The notes: generated by a model from the letters alone, not told the origin. Shown: positions 10,339 through 62,145, counted from the stretch's first letter. The stretch: DNA of 64,000 bases from IMGVR_UViG_3300041402_000314:140150-204149; one strand, 5' to 3'. Made by a program: numbers and translations.

Positions 10339-10367
10339 ATTATACCTAATTATAATTTATTTGTCAA
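10339..10367 (-). promoter_or_regulatory. sigma70-type promoter of the channel/TAXI/PspA operon
   Basis: perfect TTGACA-17nt-TATAAT. Confidence 0.8.
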
Positions 10368-15227: not shown

Positions 15228-15750
15228 TTTTCATAATTTCAGAGACTATAACATCTACTGGAGCCAACTTACCTCTCCCTATATCTCCACACGCAAGACG
15301 GCCTTCTACTGGACGAATTATAACAATCCCATCCTCGATAAGCCGATCTATATTTCTTTTATTAGCTGGAGCATAATACATAACTGTATTCATGGCAGGA
15401 CAGACTATAACAAATCTCTTTTTCATAGCCATATATGTCGTGCTGATCAGATCATCGGCTATACCATTTGCCATCTTACCGATAATATTGGCAGTAGCAG
15501 GAGCTATGACCATTTTATGCGCCCACTCTTGAGCGTATTGTATATGAGATATTTCACCGTTACTATCATCGAAGGTATTAGTAATGACACCCTCACCAGA
15601 CAATGCAGCCAAAGTACATTCACCTATCATATATTTGGCATTCTCCGACATCATAACTTTCACATTACAATCATTCTTTCTGAGTAGGTTAATAAGGTCA
15701 CATGCCTTGTATGCTGATATGCTACTGGTAACTGCTAAAAGTATGTTCAT
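15205..15750 (-). CDS. coaC: phosphopantothenoylcysteine decarboxylase (stand-alone CoaC, HFCD flavoprotein)
   Basis: SISAYKA, HI, APATANIIGKMANGIADD, PAMNTVMY, LACGDIGRG. Confidence 0.92.
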   Translation of the reverse strand: MNILLAVTSSISAYKACDLINLLRKNDCNVKVMMSENAKYMIGECTLAALSGEGVITNTFDDSNGEISHIQYAQEWAHKMVIAPATANIIGKMANGIADDLISTTYMAMKKRFVIVCPAMNTVMYYAPANKRNIDRLIEDGIVIIRPVEGRLACGDIGRGKLAPVDVIVSEIMKNEDEFYE

Positions 15751-18298: not shown

Positions 18299-18327
18299 AT
18301 TATATCATTAAAAGAATTCTTTGTCAA
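18299..18327 (-). promoter_or_regulatory. sigma70-type promoter
   Basis: perfect TTGACA-17nt-TATAAT. Confidence 0.75.
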
Positions 18328-19422: not shown

Positions 19423-19451
19423 ATTATAACAGAATGGAACTCTTCTGTCAA
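19423..19451 (-). promoter_or_regulatory. sigma70-type early promoter
   Basis: TTGACA-17nt-TATAAT with extended -10 TG. Confidence 0.8.
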
Positions 19452-38007: not shown

Positions 38008-38359
38008 CGCATTTGCCGAAGAAGATAAAAAAGTACATTTAAACGTTCCACATTCTATGAATGCTCTCATAACTTTTCAACATTGTAAAGTAAATTCAAA
38101 AGTCAAAGATGAAAAGATAATTGTCCTCAGTGATATTATAGCAAAGGAAGAAGAAAAAGTCAAGAATCTTTTTGATCAGAATAGATTATCTATTGAGAAT
38201 AGTGATATGCATAAGAAGCAAGCTAAAGAATGGAAGAAAGAATATAAACAATGTACAAAGGAATTGATAGATGCTAAAGACTGGCCTATATGGAAATTCG
38301 ATTTTAAAAGTATAAGTGTAGGTTCAATATTAACATTACTTGCAATATTAGTAATTTAG
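37937..38359 (+). CDS. putative spanin partner, overlapping the Rz-like gene
   Basis: signal peptide AFA-EE, coiled coil, C-terminal hydrophobic tail. Confidence 0.55.
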   Translation: MISTIRKTSVMLGFVLVSIFVTNSAFAEEDKKVHLNVPHSMNALITFQHCKVNSKVKDEKIIVLSDIIAKEEEKVKNLFDQNRLSIENSDMHKKQAKEWKKEYKQCTKELIDAKDWPIWKFDFKSISVGSILTLLAILVI

Positions 38360-50317: not shown

Positions 50318-51328
50318 ATGAAAAGAGCATTAGTATGTGGTGCTGGTGGATTCATCGGTAGCCATCTAGTAAAAAGACTTAAGAATGAAGGATATTGGGT
50401 TAGGGGTGTTGACCTCAAACAACCAGAATTCTCGGAGACTGAAGCAGATGATTTTTATGTCGGTGATCTTAGAAATCCTAATGTCTGTAGCACTGTTCTA
50501 CATTATAATACAACTCATGAGAAGGACTTCGATGAGGTCTATCAATTAGCTGCTGATATGGGCGGAGCTGGTTTCGTATTCTCTGGAGAAAATGATGCTG
50601 ATATCATGCATAACTCAGCACTGATCAATCTCAATATACTTAATCTGCACCATAAGTTTAAAAAGATTTTCTATAGTAGCTCGGCTTGTATGTATCCAGA
50701 ACATAATCAGCTCGACCCAGACAATCCTAATTGTACTGAGGATTCGGCATATCCAGCTAATCCAGATAGTGAATATGGATGGGAAAAACTATTCAGCGAA
50801 AGACTCTTCCTCGCATATGCTAGAAATAAAGGTGTAGATGTTAGAATAGCGAGATTCCATAATATCTTCGGTGAAGAGGGTACATGGGATGGTGGACGTG
50901 AGAAAGCTCCTGCTGCTCTATGTAGAAAGATCATAAAAACATATGGCGGAATCGAGATGTGGGGAGATGGTAAACAGACACGCTCATTCCTATATATCGA
51001 TGAGTGTGTTGAAGGAATAAGACGTTTAATGGAATCTGATTTCAAAGAACCTGTTAATATTGGTTCTGAGGAAATGGTATCTATTAAGGATTTTGCTATA
51101 CTGATAGCAACTATCGAGGATAAAGATATTGTGATTACTCATATAGACGGACCGATTGGTGTTGCTGGAAGGAATTCTGATAATACACTGATTCAGGAGA
51201 AGCTAGGTTGGAAGCCATCATTCCCATTGTTGTATGGAATTACGAAAACCTATTTCTGGATAAAAGAACAGGTACGTTTATCGGACATGGCGAAGGTAGA
51301 GATAGCTAGTGTGGATGAGAACGTATAA
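50318..51328 (+). CDS. GDP-mannose 3,5-epimerase-like NAD-dependent epimerase
   Basis: GAGGFIG, LAADMGG.GF, SSSACMYP, YGWEK, RFHNI.G, GGREKAPAA.CRK, WGDG.QTRSF. Confidence 0.9.
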   Translation: MKRALVCGAGGFIGSHLVKRLKNEGYWVRGVDLKQPEFSETEADDFYVGDLRNPNVCSTVLHYNTTHEKDFDEVYQLAADMGGAGFVFSGENDADIMHNSALINLNILNLHHKFKKIFYSSSACMYPEHNQLDPDNPNCTEDSAYPANPDSEYGWEKLFSERLFLAYARNKGVDVRIARFHNIFGEEGTWDGGREKAPAALCRKIIKTYGGIEMWGDGKQTRSFLYIDECVEGIRRLMESDFKEPVNIGSEEMVSIKDFAILIATIEDKDIVITHIDGPIGVAGRNSDNTLIQEKLGWKPSFPLLYGITKTYFWIKEQVRLSDMAKVEIASVDENV

Positions 51329-55939: not shown

Positions 55940-56374
55940 TTATATATTTTTCCACGTTATATTTCTAACTACTTTATGTATTAAATTGAGACTAACCCCA
56001 TACTTTTTTGCTATATCTAATTGCGGTTCTCCATCAGAAAATAATTTTCTTATTTGTATGACTTTTTCTTCATTTAATTTTGTTGACCTTTTATTACGTG
56101 CCTGATTATTAACAGAAGCCCAAATACAATTTTCTGGAGAATAACCAAGTGAGTTATCAATACGATCTACGGAATGTTTTATTGTAGGTCTTCGACCCAT
56201 ATCTCACAAAAATGATGTATATGAATTTCGCCATCTATCACATACCTTTATACCTCTTTCTCCATAATATGAGTACATAGGATTATTGGGATTATTACAT
56301 CTCTGAATCATTCCAGCCCACGATCTATATTCAATCGTTTGTGGCCTTTTAGCCTCTCCATGCCTCTCAAACAT
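55940..56374 (-). pseudogene. HNH homing endonuclease with an in-frame TGA
   Basis: W..M..RC.NP...Y..YG.RGI.VC.RW..S...FL*DMG.RP...S.DRIDN..GY.P.NC.WA...Q..N; TGA at 56204-56206. Confidence 0.85.
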
Positions 56375-56388
56375 TATTTGTGTTATTT

Positions 56389-58398
56389 TTAAAAGTTAAT
56401 TTTTATTGTACGGTTGAAACTTCCACCTACCTTACATAAAACATGACTCTTTTGTGTAGATGAGAATCCCAAACCGCTTAGTTGATCGTCTGATTTCTCG
56501 GTTTTCATCTTAGAACCAAGTACCTCAAATACTTTCCTGTGGTCTCTCAGTCCTTCATCAAGGAATTCATTAAAGAATCCTCTGGCCTTACTATCGTTTT
56601 TACATCCATCGAGGATAAAGAACCAGTGTTTGTTACCTGTCTTTTTTCCGTCCCAATGATTAGGTGAATTCATAATCATGGAAACTTTCCTGAATTTCTG
56701 GGTTGGTATATCCCATACTTCCTTAGATGCCTGAGTCGATGGTAATGACTTGATGAATTTGATTCCTGTCTTATGGGAATACTCGAAGGTAGCTACCGCC
56801 ACATTACTACGATTTGCTACTCTCTTATCGTAATGGAATGTATGGATAACACCATCAAATTCAATTTCGACATCAAAACCAACATCCTTTGTTTCTCTTT
56901 GAGAGTAGTTATTGACATAGATTTCATATTTACCCTCTTCCATCTTGGCTTTATTAGCCCATGTGATGTTTTCTACAGCACTTCTTGATGTACCAGAACC
57001 AGCATTCATATCAACATCTAGTTTTCCGCCTGTTGAATGTGAATGTTTACTACCATAATAAATGTGATTCCCATTAGGCTCTTTGCAGTGAATATCAAGG
57101 TCATCATGATTAAACCATGACAATGAAGCCCTGAGATCGCCAGTTACGTTTCCACCAGCTCTCTTCACACGTTCCTTGATGGAATCTGCGACTTCTCCAG
57201 TATAAGCCCATGAGAAGTTATTATCCCATTTGAAGATATGTTTAGAATCTTCATGTGCTGGAGCTATAAGACTCATCAAGTTATTAACTTGACTGTTTTC
57301 AAACATCAACTCGATACTATCAGCCTTTGGTAGTATTTTTTCAAAGAAAGTATCGGCATCAACCTCATCAACCTTCTTTAGACTCGCTGTTTTTACAGGC
57401 GCATCTTCTACCATTTCATCAAAGACATTCATTGCCTTTTTGACAGACCGATCAGCGAAGAGAACATTGGTAATTGAAATATCTTTTGCTACAGCATAAC
57501 GTCTCTGTAATGAATCACCGATACCAAGCTCTTCAACCTTCTTCTGAGCGTTTCTAATCATGGACTGAGTAACAAGAGCGGTAGTACGCTTATAATTGGT
57601 TGGAGCAACCTTTGATTCGAAGCTCTTCACTGCTTTATCAAGCTCCACACCGTCAGATATATCAGTCATCAATGTTCCGATTACAGAATTTCTCATCCTA
57701 GATGCGCCACCAAGAGTAGCAGAAGCAAGCCAACAATAGTTGTCCTTCTCTTCTTCATCTTCAATGGCATCGAATTTAGCCTTGTGAGTCTGGAGCAATT
57801 CTACAGTTGATTTATGCTCCTCTCCTCTATATATTGACTTCTGTTCAATAAGCTCAAGAACAGTTTCGATAGCTTCAGAAGAAATCTCTACTAAGCCACG
57901 CTTAAATACCTCTTTACCGCTGAAAGCTTTTGAAGTGGCTGTTCCGATATCAACTCCGCTCTTTACGAACTCCATTGGAAGTTCGATATAGAAATGTTCC
58001 CACTTTTTCAAACCGTTATCATTCATTTCATGGTTGAAGTCAGTTCCGACTTTTGACTCTCTATGAATGAAAATATTGCGTATTTTCGCAGATGTTACCA
58101 GTTCCGCCATCGCATCGGCAACAACTTGATAATGTCCACCTATCATAACATCCCAGATAGACACTTTCCTGTTATCGACAATAGCTACCATACTACCACA
58201 AGCCCTAATGAACTGCTTGCAACACTGGCAATCATGTTCGGTACGCTCACGTAAGATAGGATTACTACCTTCTGGAAAGCTATTAAGATAAGTATCCCAG
58301 ATAACATCTTTATCGATGTCAGTCTTGAATAACTTACCTCCTTTCATAGTTTTGAATTGTGCTTGTAGTGCTGTTTTGAACTTGTTAAAATCAGTCAT
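56389..58398 (-). CDS. conserved large-phage protein with YfaP/DUF2135-like domain
   Basis: HDCQCC..F; SLSW.N.DDLD.H..EP.G..IY...G.LDVD.N...VENI.W...G.Y...V.NY. Confidence 0.8.
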   Translation of the reverse strand: MTDFNKFKTALQAQFKTMKGGKLFKTDIDKDVIWDTYLNSFPEGSNPILRERTEHDCQCCKQFIRACGSMVAIVDNRKVSIWDVMIGGHYQVVADAMAELVTSAKIRNIFIHRESKVGTDFNHEMNDNGLKKWEHFYIELPMEFVKSGVDIGTATSKAFSGKEVFKRGLVEISSEAIETVLELIEQKSIYRGEEHKSTVELLQTHKAKFDAIEDEEEKDNYCWLASATLGGASRMRNSVIGTLMTDISDGVELDKAVKSFESKVAPTNYKRTTALVTQSMIRNAQKKVEELGIGDSLQRRYAVAKDISITNVLFADRSVKKAMNVFDEMVEDAPVKTASLKKVDEVDADTFFEKILPKADSIELMFENSQVNNLMSLIAPAHEDSKHIFKWDNNFSWAYTGEVADSIKERVKRAGGNVTGDLRASLSWFNHDDLDIHCKEPNGNHIYYGSKHSHSTGGKLDVDMNAGSGTSRSAVENITWANKAKMEEGKYEIYVNNYSQRETKDVGFDVEIEFDGVIHTFHYDKRVANRSNVAVATFEYSHKTGIKFIKSLPSTQASKEVWDIPTQKFRKVSMIMNSPNHWDGKKTGNKHWFFILDGCKNDSKARGFFNEFLDEGLRDHRKVFEVLGSKMKTEKSDDQLSGLGFSSTQKSHVLCKVGGSFNRTIKINF

Positions 58399-58429
58399 TT
58401 TTACTCCTCCCTTATACTTTATTCAAAAA

Positions 58430-58504
58430 TGGTGTAGTGAACTGGATTTGATACCAATATCGCCCAAGCTGGTGCAAGGGAGTTCTAACTTAAACTACCA
58501 CTAC
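58430..58504 (-). ncRNA. tRNA-like RNA 1 (degenerate anticodon arm)
   Basis: GUAGUGG/UCACUAC-A-CCA acceptor, GUUU/GAAC D stem, AUUGG-UAUCAAAU-CCAGU T arm. Confidence 0.75.
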
Positions 58505-58511
58505 AAATTTG

Positions 58512-58658
58512 TTTAACTGCTTATTGTGAGAGAGGGCTTCAACAACTGGTTACTAATCGAGGCTTTCACCAGTGAATCCTATTTGCACAAAGCCTCTATA
58601 GCGACTAAGACTTCAAGTGTTATATTCGTCTAACACTCTCTCCCAATAAATAGTTAAA
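58512..58658 (-). ncRNA. structured RNA A (long terminal stem, possible pseudoknot)
   Basis: ~23-bp imperfect terminal stem; AGUGUUA/UAACACU and GAGGCUUU/AAAGCCUC hairpins; ACUGGU/ACCAGU pairing. Confidence 0.6.
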
Positions 58659-58730
58659 TGGTGTGGGAAGTTGGACTTGATACCAACATCGCTCGGTATT
58701 CTCCGACATCTTAACTTAGACGACTCCCAC
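58659..58730 (-). ncRNA. tRNA-like RNA 2 (short anticodon arm)
   Basis: GUGGGAG/UUCCCAC-A-CCA acceptor, GUCU/AGAU D stem, UCGG-AGAAUA-CCGA, GUUGG-UAUCAAGU-CCAAC T arm. Confidence 0.75.
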
Positions 58731-58740
58731 ATAAAACTAA

Positions 58741-58872
58741 TGGATAGTTGGTTCGGAAGCTTTTTTGAATTATAATCCTCGCCAATAAACTCGGATTCGG
58801 CTTTCATTAATCACTTGGTATTCTACAGTCGTAACCGATTGAACCCTAAGTGTTTCCTCTTCCAACTACCCA
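58741..58872 (-). ncRNA. structured RNA B
   Basis: UGGGUAGUUGG/CCAACUAUCCA terminal stem; CACUU/AAGUG and AAUCC/GGAUU stems; follows promoter and boxA. Confidence 0.6.
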
Positions 58873-58881
58873 AATCAAATT

Positions 58882-58937
58882 TTTAAAGAACTTTTACTTT
58901 ATGATACTATTATAACAAATTCAGTTTCGTATGTCAA
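58882..58937 (-). promoter_or_regulatory. sigma70 promoter with boxA-like element
   Basis: TTGACA-17-TATAAT (58909-58937) then GTTCTTTAAA. Confidence 0.85.
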
Positions 58938-58951
58938 GCTTTATTTTAAAA

Positions 58952-59120
58952 TAATTAGTGGTGTGCTATTACGCCAAAGGGAACAGGGAACAGTAACCCA
59001 AATTTACGCCTCTATACTGTTTCTTCCTTGGAGGTTCGCTGTTACGGTACGCTTCTTAATACAACATAAGAACCCACTCTTTAAAAGATGGCTGCTTCCA
59101 AGCCAACCTCCCACTAATCA
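58952..59120 (-). ncRNA. 23S rRNA L11-binding domain (H43-H44) mimic with ~100-nt insertion
   Basis: GGAGGUUGGCUUGGAAGCAGCCAUCUUUUAAAGAGU ... GCGUAAUAGCACAC closed by AUUAGUGG/CCACUAAU. Confidence 0.85.
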
Positions 59121-59121
59121 A

Positions 59122-59186
59122 TTCAAAGAACTTTTATTACTTTTACTTTATGATACTATTATAACAAATTCGATTCTGGTTGTCAA
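59122..59186 (-). promoter_or_regulatory. sigma70 promoter with boxA-like element
   Basis: TTGACA-17-TATAAT (59158-59186) then GTTCTTTGAA; 32 nt identical to 58891-58922. Confidence 0.85.
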
Positions 59187-59194
59187 GTAAAATC

Positions 59195-60127
59195 TTATAA
59201 TAATTTTTCTATAGTTAATTTTCTATATTCATAGTAAGGAATTCGTATTAACCGTATATTATTATTTTTACAATATTCATCTTTTAATTTATCATTTTCT
59301 AGTTGTTTCAAAAATCTTTTTTGCCCACCAAAATATTTTATTGGTTTGTAATGCTGCTGTCCATCATACTCTATCATATGTGATATAGTATTACTACCAA
59401 AGATAGCAAAATCAAACATTAATTTCTTTTTATTTTTTAAATCTCCAAAAGAATATTGCGTTTCATATCTAATTTTATTTTCATCGAGAAGTTTTTTAAT
59501 CTTTTTTTCGCCCTTACTAAAATTACAATATATACACCCACGACTACGTAATGATCTTGCTTCCTTCTTCTCTCCACAATTTCCACATATGACACACTTA
59601 TACGCGATTGGCATGTTACCACTAATATATTCAGATGTCAATTCTATAGTATTGTTGTGTTCTATATTTATTTCTTCAAGAAACTGAGGATGCTTTTTTC
59701 TAACTTTTTTTGTCTGTGCTTCTCTACCACACTTAGAACAACCAAACCCCTGTTTTAAATATGTTGGCTTTGCTCTCCACGTGTGACGGCATATTTTACA
59801 CTTAATCTTTATATATTCATTACACCCCGTATAATCATCTATAAATTCTATCTTACTTTTTATATTATCGCCAAGTCTATCCATATATTTTTCGGTATCA
59901 AGATTCCATTTTACAGTATCTTTTGCTTTTTTTAATCCGCAAGCGGGACACCCACATCCTTTACTCTTGGTTAAAGTTGATGCAATAGGATTCCAAACAG
60001 TAGTACATTTGGTACACTTAACTTTTATTCTATCTCTACCTGTTACATATATTGTTAAAAACTTATAGATATTTCCATGAATTCTTATTACTTTTTGTTT
60101 AAATTCTTTATGTGTTAGCTTTCGCAT
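59195..60127 (-). CDS. free-standing endonuclease: three Zn-ribbon repeats plus Vsr/DUF559-like domain
   Basis: repeated Y......I..KCxxC...W.......GCxxC; SKGE, FDF, IEYDG.QHY, D..K..YC, LIRIPY. Confidence 0.85.
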   Translation of the reverse strand: MRKLTHKEFKQKVIRIHGNIYKFLTIYVTGRDRIKVKCTKCTTVWNPIASTLTKSKGCGCPACGLKKAKDTVKWNLDTEKYMDRLGDNIKSKIEFIDDYTGCNEYIKIKCKICRHTWRAKPTYLKQGFGCSKCGREAQTKKVRKKHPQFLEEINIEHNNTIELTSEYISGNMPIAYKCVICGNCGEKKEARSLRSRGCIYCNFSKGEKKIKKLLDENKIRYETQYSFGDLKNKKKLMFDFAIFGSNTISHMIEYDGQQHYKPIKYFGGQKRFLKQLENDKLKDEYCKNNNIRLIRIPYYEYRKLTIEKLL

Positions 60128-60258: not shown

Positions 60259-61242
60259 TTAAAATATTTTATCAATGAGTGTAGTAAGATAAGAGTCATC
60301 CAATTTCCAATCAGGCTCATCAGTTCTTTTCTTATCTATCGCACTAATCACTTCCGCAAAATATGCAGAATCGACACCCACTAGCTGATCTCTCAGAACT
60401 TCGACACTCTCTAAATCGAGTTTGCTTACTTGAAAACACATTTTAAAATACTGTCCAGCATTTATCTTCCATCCTCGTTGGATGAACTTTCTAGTTCGGA
60501 TGATAGAGGCTAGTGGGTATTTAGAACCGTTATATTTCAATTCCTTAGTGAGAGTACATTCCAAGGCATCTGCATTCACATGAACTTCCCTATCACTAGA
60601 CAACCAATAATTAGTACAATGAACGAAGTCATAGTTCTCATGTATCTCTTCAGGTTCACCATAAAAGCGTATAACGAGCTGTATATCATTACTTAAGGTG
60701 ATAGCATTGCTGGACAAGAATACTGGCCTGTATGCGTCTTCTGAGCCGTCTAACTGGTCTAATTCTTTAGCTCCAATATCATCTGCTTCAGAAATCATTA
60801 AGTCTGGAGTGGTTGCTAGAGTTTTCACTTTAGTATCTTCCAATACTTCAGTGGCAGCATCCAGATAATCGGTTCCTTTTTGTTGATCTAAGGTTTCGAA
60901 ATATCGATAAGTTCCTTCTTTATCGCCTTCACTAACCACACCAGCCGATTGAACTTTAATGGCTATTCTGCCGTTAGTATCCGTTACAAGAGCGGTCAAT
61001 TTATTGGGGTGTCTTTTAGCAAAATCTTTAGCATAATATTTCGCCACCTCTAAACATGTTTCTTTATTGGTGAAGTAATAATCATAGTCATTTACCTGTT
61101 CTCCCTGAAACATAGATACTATGGCTCCACCAGTGATGATAGAATTCTCATTTACGAGTCTTCTTACCTTCTCATCAGTAATCGAGGCTATAAATTCCTT
61201 ATGTTTTGCGAGAAGATTTTTCTCAATTCTTTTTCTATTCAT
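60259..61242 (-). CDS. Pol-beta-superfamily nucleotidyltransferase-like protein
   Basis: ITGGAI......VNDYDYYF, NAITL, QL, YDFVHC, R..KF..RG. Confidence 0.75.
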   Translation of the reverse strand: MNRKRIEKNLLAKHKEFIASITDEKVRRLVNENSIITGGAIVSMFQGEQVNDYDYYFTNKETCLEVAKYYAKDFAKRHPNKLTALVTDTNGRIAIKVQSAGVVSEGDKEGTYRYFETLDQQKGTDYLDAATEVLEDTKVKTLATTPDLMISEADDIGAKELDQLDGSEDAYRPVFLSSNAITLSNDIQLVIRFYGEPEEIHENYDFVHCTNYWLSSDREVHVNADALECTLTKELKYNGSKYPLASIIRTRKFIQRGWKINAGQYFKMCFQVSKLDLESVEVLRDQLVGVDSAYFAEVISAIDKKRTDEPDWKLDDSYLTTLIDKIF

Positions 61243-61254
61243 TCGTTAAACTCC

Positions 61255-62145
61255 TTAACTGTTATAATTTTCAATGACGTTTTGAATATCCTTCAGTGCT
61301 TGAGTAGCCTTATCAGGATTAACCACACATTTATCTAAAGAACCATAATACTCTTCAAGGCAGTTTAGAAGTAAATTCTTGATAGCTCCCTCATCAGGAG
61401 AATGGGGCAGCTTAGAATTAAGATACAAAGTTTCTAATTCAGCTTCTTTCTTTTGAAAATAATTTTTAATATCATCAATAGACCATTCGCCCTTTCTGAT
61501 GGCTTTCAACTGTTCTCGATTCCTTTCTAAATCTAAATCCCCTTCCATCATAATTTGTTCCACTTCTCCGAGAAGACGTGGAACGTGATAAGCAAATTTA
61601 GTGTCAAATCCATGACGGTCTACTAAATCCTTTCGCTTTCCTGCTTTGGGTTTTTTAATTTCCATTTTATGTAATTGACTATAACTATAACCTTTGAAGC
61701 GATGCCACGCTCCTTTATGAAGAAAATCCTTTCGTTTCTCTCTAATCATATTACCTATTTTAGTTGAATGTGTAATACATCTAATAGGGACGAAGAGAGC
61801 ATCTATAACATTAGGATTATTATCCATACAAAGTTGAAAGAACTTAATAATGGAAAAAACTTGAAAATCGTATTCCTTTTCTCCGTCTTGCGACTTCACA
61901 TGATGTTCTTGATAGGTGTCAAATCTTTTTATCTGCCTTCCGAAACCTTGAATTTCTCCATTGAGATGTGGAAAAATCATATCTTTATGTGGGATACATA
62001 CTCCGTATACATCTACATCAGAGGTATCATTAGAAACCCCATACGCAAAACTACCCATAATAACTTCATATACCATGCTATTAGGCAACCATTTAGGAGG
62101 ACTAATTAGTTTTTGTTTATCCAACTTTTGTACATAACTACTCAT
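61255..62145 (-). CDS. predicted nucleotidyltransferase (YcgL/RlaP-like)
   Basis: GS.AYG....SD.D..G, NNPN...L, GY...Q, G.DTK..YH..RL. Confidence 0.88.
   Translation of the reverse strand: MSSYVQKLDKQKLISPPKWLPNSMVYEVIMGSFAYGVSNDTSDVDVYGVCIPHKDMIFPHLNGEIQGFGRQIKRFDTYQEHHVKSQDGEKEYDFQVFSIIKFFQLCMDNNPNVIDALFVPIRCITHSTKIGNMIREKRKDFLHKGAWHRFKGYSYSQLHKMEIKKPKAGKRKDLVDRHGFDTKFAYHVPRLLGEVEQIMMEGDLDLERNREQLKAIRKGEWSIDDIKNYFQKKEAELETLYLNSKLPHSPDEGAIKNLLLNCLEEYYGSLDKCVVNPDKATQALKDIQNVIENYNS

Follow-up and report, generated by a model that had tools for sequence, protein, structure and literature searches.

A promoter-driven cluster of structured phage RNAs that includes a mimic of the ribosomal GTPase-associated centre, a member of a widespread phage RNA family

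The imitation of ribosomal RNA (rRNA) by other RNA molecules is known from the leaders of ribosomal-protein operons, which act in cis and regulate these cellular operons. Phages, for their part, are known to carry tRNAs, transfer-messenger RNA (tmRNA) and a few unexplained stable RNAs, and their tRNA arrays reportedly counter defences aimed at translation. The rRNA domain that matters most in the present work is the GTPase-associated centre of 23S rRNA, helices H42-H44, which is exactly what the C-terminal domain of the ribosomal protein uL11 binds. A further known case is that of the bacterial Y RNAs (YrlA), partners of Ro60/Rsr, which contain a tRNA-like domain (PMC4201824). We describe here a phage locus that recalls each of these systems in some respect. 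It lies at positions 58430-59186 of the last 64 kb (henceforth the window) of the 204-kb IMG/VR contig IMGVR_UViG_3300041402_000314, and its minus strand holds two promoters, each followed by the sequence GTTCTTT(A/G)AA, together with five structured RNAs, which we name, in the order of transcription, RNA1, RNA B, tRNA-like 2, RNA A and tRNA-like 1. What was a gap without annotated genes in the window has in this way become ten defined features (Table 1), and the first of the RNAs is an rRNA mimic of a kind shared by many phages.

A preliminary description of the window had already spoken of an rRNA mimic, and the comparisons made since then bear it out. In a permissive Rfam scan, 59110-59067 aligns to positions 1097-1144 of the LSU_rRNA_bacteria model (E=2.6e-4), a region that we take to be the GTPase-associated centre, E. 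coli 1051-1108. When RNA1 is aligned locally with an E. coli rrn operon the score is 56, no shuffle exceeding 34, and 34 of 38 bases are identical. The 3' end of the RNA contains GCGUAAUAGCACAC, that is, the H44 loop, while an extra helix domain of about 96 nucleotides (nt), with a GGG/CCC base, is inserted between positions 1090 and 1091, and the whole is closed by the stem AUUAGUGG/CCACUAAU. Finally, a covariance model built from 24 other phages, the window being excluded, gives RNA1 a score of 103.1 bits (E=2.8e-29) over positions 1-170 of 170, its single match in the window being 58952-59119(-). Judged by these likenesses, RNA1 is a genuine mimic of rRNA. The Rfam scan that had been suggested as a check returned no ordinary tRNA or Rfam family for the cluster, and the likeness of RNA1 to the large-subunit rRNA emerged at a permissive threshold only; with ARAGORN at its default setting and Rfam at its curated thresholds there were zero matches across the whole 64-kb window.

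RNA1 is, moreover, one member of a widespread family of phage RNAs, about half of which lie in tRNA arrays, and this membership is an addition to what had been described before. Scanning IMG/VR with an 18-mer of H43 retrieved 29 stretches, and scanning it with the 3' motif retrieved at least 120 viral contigs, as against 69 contigs, mainly from metagenome-assembled genomes, among 185,579 species genomes; by these counts the family is associated with phages. Family counts and covariation are given for 66 unique members, and it should be kept in mind that the search patterns imposed part of the invariance that is seen. The members share a common order of parts, which begins with a closing stem and proceeds through GGAUGU(U/A), the hairpin GGCUURGAAGCAGCC, the junction UAAAGAGU and an inserted helix to UUUGG-CGUARYAGCACAC, followed by the return strand of the closing stem. 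Direct reading finds all these parts in the RNA1 of the window. Almost base for base, the members reproduce the GTPase-associated centre in its junction and in the loops of H43 and H44, while a freely covarying closing stem replaces H42 and a variable extra helix stands within H44. The spacing between the two conserved motifs varies from 65 to 470 nt, with lineage-specific inserts of about 35 to about 450 nt; one of the short members, of about 110 nt, is L040:2309-2415, and two versions without insert, about 58 nt long, exist at the loci L050/L066 and L065 (L-numbers are labels of family loci), where the neighbouring genes (DnaJ, GIY-YIG) are uninformative.

The structure is supported by covariation. 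In the closing stem of the 66 members 448 of 528 cells are paired, as compared with 256 +/- 10 when partners are shuffled, and most of its positions show all six pair types. RNAalifold, applied to 24 members, proposes 21 pairs, 11 of which display compensatory changes, among them 1057:1081 and 1058:1080 as well as the four basal pairs of the inserted helix. Positions 1059-1060, 1062-1066, 1068-1077, 1091-1095, 1098-1100 and 1102-1103 are invariant or nearly so, with the reservation about search patterns made above, and at position 1067 A is found in 48 members and G in the other 18. The core is variable at 1057:1081, 1058:1080, 1061 and 1078. A second insertion is seen in the 3' strand of H43, right after GCAGCCA, at six loci (L077, L109, L133, L179, L100, L174), so that the core tolerates expansion at two sites. 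The inserts themselves define subfamilies: in one of them the motif GGCACCCCGGAAACGGUAAGGCUGAA stands just before UUUGG-H44 (L069:2495-2690 in phage pf16, L070:2480-2790 in Aeromonas phage 4_4572, L087, L193 and L107), and a second one (L056, L143, L108, L250) has the motif GAUGUGCCGAUGGGUAAUA. No Rfam match was found for the GGCACCCCGGAAACGGUAAGGCUGAA subfamily in pf16 or Aeromonas 4_4572, the two loci scanned. Repeated H44-type loops were considered as a general trait of the inserts, and the count, 10 of 66 members as against 5.4 +/- 2.1 after shuffling, is unconvincing; pairing between AAAG and CUUU around the insert was rejected, because changes of AAAG to AAGG or AAUG are uncompensated. 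Rfam 15 holds no family for RNAs of the RNA1 type, and no phage mimic of the GTPase-associated centre was found described in a full-text literature search, although a description beyond its coverage is possible; the family is apparently undescribed.

A tRNA on the same strand lies within 300 nt in 34 of the 66 members, many of which sit within arrays of 5-26 tRNAs on contigs of 140-520 kb. The window has no canonical tRNA, and its two tRNA-like units lie 220-610 nt downstream of RNA1. Cultured phages are also concerned: a family RNA stands between tRNA-Asn and tRNA-Pro in Pseudomonas phage pf16 (NC_041881), where its predicted position is about 29,590-29,400, and upstream of tRNA-Met in Aeromonas phage 4_4572, unannotated in both; matches occur in Pseudomonas phages Astolliot and Milchi, and we infer that Cronobacter phage GAP32 carries a further copy. 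As pf16, Aeromonas 4_4572 and, presumably, GAP32 hold unannotated copies in culture, the matter is readily testable. At one locus the mimic-bearing tRNA array also encodes tmRNA and a tRNA with a CUA anticodon, of the amber suppressor type (L041:2083-2433 and L041:332-407), and L058 likewise has a CUA tRNA. The family could account for some of the non-tRNA sequence in phage tRNA arrays that is still unexplained, and it is an addition for RNA databases.

Turning back to the window, the region as a whole is confirmed as a non-coding, promoter-driven RNA cluster. The claim that some 760 nt are devoid of a credible open reading frame (ORF) stands: the ORFs of at least 40 codons in the RNA region are only 58613-58807 (-), 58963-59190 (+) and 58316-58516 (+), and the minus-strand one is disrupted in a close relative by scattered indels of 1-2 nt, for a net change of -7. 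Folding gives each of the five segments its own terminal helix or acceptor stem, in agreement with the proposal of five non-coding RNAs on this strand, and tRNA-like 1 is followed by a ribosome-binding site (RBS) and then by the start of a 669-aa ORF at 58398. The cluster is real, and largely as it had been described, while its interpretation was only partly right: 'translation-apparatus mimics' holds for RNA1 only, since neither RNA A nor RNA B resembles rRNA or a family in Rfam.

The two promoters had been noted as perfect copies of TTGACA-17-TATAAT, and they are indeed the sole 12/12 sigma-70 matches in 54-64 kb. The identical block that they share is also real, its length being 33 nt rather than 32 (58890-58922 = 59139-59171), and it lies within a 67-nt repeat of 82% identity. 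If one mismatch is allowed, the TG-extended promoter pattern has 7 occurrences in the window, all of them on the minus strand, against 0.12 expected. The five other promoters, of the form TTGACA-N14-TGNTATAAT with at most one mismatch, are on the minus strand at 827-855, 10339-10367, 18299-18327, 19423-19451 and 38135-38163, and the set of seven is probably the host-sigma-70 promoter class of this phage. In run X2 (X2 and X3 being metagenome runs with cold-seep relatives), contig depth at the P2 block is several-fold above that of its flanks, and this higher depth suggests that the block recurs in related genomes.

Behind each promoter, as had been remarked, comes a boxA-like sequence. GTTCTTTRAA has 6 matches in the window against 0.67 expected, and three of the four other sites were read, all of them antisense within plus-strand ORFs. 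The spacer boxA of the E. coli rrn operon, GCTCTTTAAAAATCTGGAT, and the motif of the phage P2 unit, GTTCTTTAAAAATTTGATT, are near-identical; in a longer comparison the E. coli leader reads TGCTCTTTAACAA, the spacer TGCTCTTTAAAAATCTGGAT and the phage P2 unit AGTTCTTTAAAAATTTGATT. Both phage motifs are GCUCUUUAA-like, come soon after a promoter and precede an untranslated structured RNA, as is characteristic of an rrn-type boxA, and GTTCTTTGRA recurs 28-41 nt upstream of the H43 motif in the unrelated phage loci L044, L057 and L068. We take GUUCUUUGAAAA to be the Firmicutes form of boxA; confirmation in the literature was sought and not obtained. A further observation concerns 59089-59105 (-), where the H43 hairpin of RNA1 followed by UCUUUUAAAG was flagged as terminator-like: a weak internal terminator within RNA1 would give a reason for the presence of a boxA upstream.

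In line with the original proposal, both tRNA-like units have a cloverleaf as their minimum-free-energy fold, complete with a 7-bp acceptor stem, the D, anticodon and T arms, a discriminator A and an encoded CCA end. Their 3' halves are 81% identical, and comparison of 17 acceptor, D and T stem pairs reveals 6 double changes, 3 single ones and 0 broken pairs; the six compensatory changes lend support to the stems. Neither unit has the 7-nt anticodon loop with U33, the 7-nt T loop (UUCRANY) or the G18G19 of a canonical tRNA: the loop at the anticodon position of tRNA-like 2 is AGAAUA, the corresponding arm of tRNA-like 1 is irregular, the T loops have 8 nt (UAUCAARU) and the D loops, AAGUUA, are without GG. 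There is no match to RF00005 even at E up to 10 and no ARAGORN call by default, ARAGORN reporting the units only at -ps80, a setting rich in false positives. The units are real cloverleaves but not decoding tRNAs. In a cold-seep relative the place of tRNA-like 2 is taken by a heavily rewritten version of 66 nt, whereas RNA A and RNA B on either side of it show 97-98% identity; a local swap, or else very rapid evolution of this single unit, is indicated. ACCA and the T arm persist in the rewritten version, and its acceptor stem is maintained through compensatory changes (G5-C to U-A, G7.U to G-C); the conserved part of these units is the minihelix of acceptor stem and T arm with ACCA. An acceptor/T-arm minihelix with CCA is the minimal shape for RNase P and for enzymes that act on CCA ends. 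A BLAST match of tRNA-like 2 at 15640-15659 was discarded, as it lies within an ORF.

RNA B has the better supported fold of the two remaining RNAs, with z = -3.46 and none of 200 shuffles equally stable, and all five substitutions seen in the cold-seep relative fall at unpaired positions. RNA A, whose fold is weaker (z = -1.8), is 97-98% conserved in cold-seep relatives. The two RNAs have short blocks in common, AACACUU and UGAAAGCC, and neither matches Rfam at E up to 10. A likeness to rRNA was also looked for in RNA A, RNA B and the tRNA-like units, and dismissed, their local scores against the rrn operon remaining within those of shuffles. When homologues of the tRNA-like units and of RNA A and RNA B were sought with nhmmer and blastn in 2.1 Mb of fetched phage loci, only the window's own contig came up, and a scan of the viral collection with the T-arm motif common to both units had the same outcome. 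RNA A and RNA B are structured orphans, with no sign of mimicry in either.

Table 1. Coordinates of the ten features of the RNA cluster and, in the last four rows, of neighbouring genes (positions in the window).
Feature	Coordinates	Strand	Closing or acceptor stem	Description
Promoter P1	59158..59186	-		TTGACA, 17 nt, TGnTATAAT; 12/12, TG-extended
boxA-like motif 1	59122..59131	-		GTTCTTTGAA; 26 nt past -10 of P1
RNA1	58952..59119	-	59118-58954 (closing)	Mimic of 23S GTPase-associated centre, H42-H44, E. coli 1051-1108
Promoter P2	58909..58937	-		TTGACA, 17 nt, TGnTATAAT; 12/12; duplicate of P1
boxA-like motif 2	58882..58891	-		GTTCTTTAAA(AATTTGAT); 17 nt past -10 of P2
RNA B	58741..58872	-	58872-58741 (closing)	132 nt, 11-bp closing stem, two hairpin arms
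tRNA-like 2	58659..58730	-	58730-58659 (acceptor)	Cloverleaf, 7-bp acceptor, encoded ACCA, 8-nt T loop, 6-nt 'anticodon' loop
RNA A	58524..58646	-	58646-58524 (closing)	123 nt, 8-9-bp closing stem
tRNA-like 1	58430..58504	-	58504-58430 (acceptor)	Cloverleaf, encoded ACCA; paralogue of tRNA-like 2
669-aa gene	56389..58398	-		DUF8224 / phrog_1735; downstream of RNAs
HNH gene	59195-60127			Flanks RNA cluster
Split HNH gene	55940-56374	-		ORFs 56204-56374 (56 aa) and 55940-56200 (86 aa); same HNH families, N-terminal and following parts
phrog_4400 protein	60259-61242	-		Weak nucleotidyltransferase match
RlaP-family nucleotidyltransferase	61255-62145	-		Predicted; RNA-repair-type, Pol-beta

The 669-aa gene is probably co-transcribed with the RNAs, since no terminator was found between tRNA-like 1 and its RBS. 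Its product belongs to a family present in 543 phage records, and searches of Pfam and NCBIfam, of the PDB by AlphaFold2 and Foldseek, and of the ESM Atlas gave nothing beyond DUF8224 / phrog_1735 and no matching fold. It had been anticipated that the same RNA set might stand upstream of homologues of this gene; this did not prove to be the case, as motif, nhmmer and ARAGORN searches found it at 0 of 38 viral and 0 of 80 metagenomic loci, and with the set absent from all 118 the gene is not a conserved partner. Ordinary tRNAs lie upstream in a few of these loci. Upstream of the RNAs of the window come an HNH homing endonuclease, a phrog_4400 protein and a nucleotidyltransferase of the RlaP type; the last two have no detectable relationship to each other, and the presence of two nucleotidyltransferase-like genes near RNAs that end in ACCA makes a link with repair or addition at the 3' end conceivable. 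The reading frames at 55940-56374, directly downstream of the 669-aa gene, are those of an HNH gene interrupted by a stop or a frameshift, so that homing endonucleases are seen on both sides of the RNA cluster and the 669-aa gene. As for the phage itself, its sequence is present in marine-sediment and cold-seep metagenomes, and no close relative at the DNA level was found among GenBank phages. When 40-58.4 kb was compared with GenBank phages by megablast, a single match emerged, a stretch of 132 nt around 50660-50800 that shares 83% identity with the gene for a nucleotide-sugar epimerase in Synechococcus phage S-T4.

How these elements may work together can now be considered. In the reading that we prefer, and to which we give a probability of about one half, the cluster is a phage operon of stable non-coding RNAs, organized in the manner of an rrn operon, in which RNA1 is a decoy for a ligand of the GTPase-associated centre. 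The duplicated strong sigma-70 promoters P1 and P2 would each drive transcription through a boxA-type site, and this site would load the host Nus antitermination complex, shielding the transcript from Rho and from pausing; some 760 nt of untranslated structured RNA would be the kind of transcript that needs such protection. Primary transcripts would then be cut at the tRNA-like cloverleaves, by RNase P on the 5' side and by trimming to the encoded ACCA on the 3' side, a processing that is made plausible by the fact that these units are real cloverleaves with an encoded ACCA, and transcription would run on into the 669-aa gene. RNA1 would fold like the ribosomal centre and act, off the ribosome, as a decoy for what usually binds there. 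Free uL11 would be the simplest candidate, because its C-terminal domain binds exactly the H42-H44 domain, the alternative being a host toxin directed against H43/H44.

Several observations weigh against this scheme. An exact boxA-like motif is found upstream in just 4 of 25 family members. The RNA1 of the window has G at 1067, where rRNA and most members have A, and the z-score of its fold, -1.23, is unremarkable; furthermore, the extra helix splits H44 at 1090/1091 and U1101 is changed to A, so that neither the native tertiary fold nor the binding of uL11 is guaranteed. In the tRNA-like units the want of a canonical T loop and of GG in the D loop makes recognition of the elbow by RNase P uncertain, and for RNA A and RNA B, which have no distant homologues, the structures come from single-sequence folding and from a near-identical relative.

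The same RNAs might, on the other hand, be counter-defence decoys and not uL11 sponges, RNA1 and its relatives absorbing toxins, of the host or of a competitor, that modify or cut H43/H44, and thereby sparing the ribosomes, while the minihelices absorb toxins of the acceptor or CCA end. It fits with this idea that the family sits in tRNA arrays, which have been proposed to be anti-defence devices, that the loops are its most conserved parts, and that tRNA-like 2 has strongly diverged next to an RNA A and an RNA B that are 97-98% identical in the relative, as in an arms race or a swap. The centre is also an established toxin target, and Tre23, which ADP-ribosylates H44 at 1095-1098, is a toxin with exactly the required site (PMC8661411). 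Yet the loci contain nothing that would tie RNA1 to one defence or another, an enzyme could be decoyed stoichiometrically only at a very high copy number of the RNA, and the fast divergence of tRNA-like 2 may equally mean relaxed constraint. We also know of no anti-phage system that targets the GTPase-associated centre, and we hold this explanation to be unlikely. We regard as quite unlikely the idea that the rRNA-like core is a folding scaffold, or a handle for processing or protection, the variable insert holding a lineage-specific function and RNA A and RNA B being cargo without scaffold. Inserts that range from about 35 to about 450 nt and are lineage-specific, with subfamilies that have motifs of their own such as GGCACCCCGGAAACGGUAAGGCUGAA, are what would be expected of it, but versions of about 58 nt without insert exist, and a mere scaffold would not need to be nearly identical to rRNA in exposed loop bases.

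One might also think of the whole region as a long structured 5' leader which regulates the 669-aa gene in cis, for instance by binding a protein or a metabolite. The missing terminator before the RBS, hence a probable common transcript, speaks for it. Nevertheless, relatives of RNA1 exist in at least 180 contigs that are unrelated to the 669-aa gene, mostly among tRNAs, the RNAs are absent from the 118 loci of its homologues, and the pair of separate promoters, the closing stem of each RNA and the encoded ACCA ends speak for individual products, so that such a leader is very improbable. Barely credible, and already disfavoured by covariation, is the view of the elements as decaying leftovers devoid of any function, namely a piece of 23S rDNA captured from the host plus a pair of tRNA pseudogenes. 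The tRNA-like units do fail the ARAGORN defaults and the Rfam tRNA model, and RNA A and RNA B are without distant homologues; but decay is hard to reconcile with an RNA1 core that phages of many host phyla have kept and that shows abundant compensatory changes in three helices, with stems of the tRNA-like units kept by 6 double changes and 0 broken pairs, or with promoters that are perfect and duplicated.

Beyond the window, we may tentatively extend the preferred reading, that of an operon with an rRNA decoy, to the family at large, in a form that is possible although the odds are somewhat against it: phages of many host phyla would deploy, within their tRNA arrays, a trans-acting RNA copy of the GTPase-associated centre, which either titrates or strips uL11 or else decoys toxins of H43/H44. 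Many phages may accordingly interfere by RNA mimicry with the uL11-binding part of the translation machinery. If this were true, titration of uL11 would blunt RelA-dependent stringent signalling or retune ribosomes, and the family would represent a previously unrecognized class of viral RNA directed at the factor-binding site of the ribosome. A free-standing and conserved phage RNA of the uL11/thiostrepton-loop domain would constitute a new viral route to the translation machinery, and the cluster of the window would enlarge this toolkit by RNA A, RNA B and minihelix decoys.

It remains to place the cluster among known systems. Like the Y RNAs it contains tRNA-like modules, and the gene of a predicted RNA-repair-type nucleotidyltransferase (RlaP) lies 2 kb upstream of the RNAs; the tRNA-like units, however, are complete and separate cloverleaves with ACCA ends, no Y RNA was matched in Rfam and no Ro/TROVE domain was found among the neighbouring proteins. 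Species 1 and 2 of T4 (rnaC, rnaD) are likewise stable RNAs from a phage tRNA cluster, set free from a precursor that they share with the tRNAs; rnaC has a tRNA-type T arm and rnaD ends in CACCA, but neither contains an rRNA-like core as RNA1 does. As relatives they were rejected, a search of the T4 locus showing no sequence similarity to any of the five RNAs. The leaders of ribosomal-protein operons, such as the L10 leader (RF00557), offer the closest parallel in principle, an RNA that imitates the protein site of stalk-region rRNA in order to bind a ribosomal protein. RNA1, in contrast, is phage-encoded and stands among tRNAs with no ribosomal-protein gene downstream; none was found in its neighbourhood, and no leader family of Rfam was matched. 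The organization of the cluster is that of rrn operons, where a strong promoter is likewise followed by a boxA-like GYUCUUUAA and RNAs with closing stems alternate with tRNA-shaped units, except that the phage RNAs have 70-170 nt and are not rRNAs, that the tRNA-shaped units are non-decoding, and that the closing stems, at 8-11 bp, fall short of what a classical RNase III site requires. With respect to the GTPase-associated centre of 23S rRNA itself, the site of uL11 and thiostrepton, the phage RNA differs in being free-standing, about 110-600 nt long and outside any 23S gene, with an H42 that is a stem of arbitrary sequence, an extra helix at 1090/1091, A and not U at 1101 and, in the window, G1067. 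In the RNA1 family, nonetheless, the stem-loop of H43, the loop of H44 (GCGUAAYAGC) and the junction UUAAAGAGU are nearly identical to those of the centre, and 1057:1081 and 1058:1080 covary as a helix.

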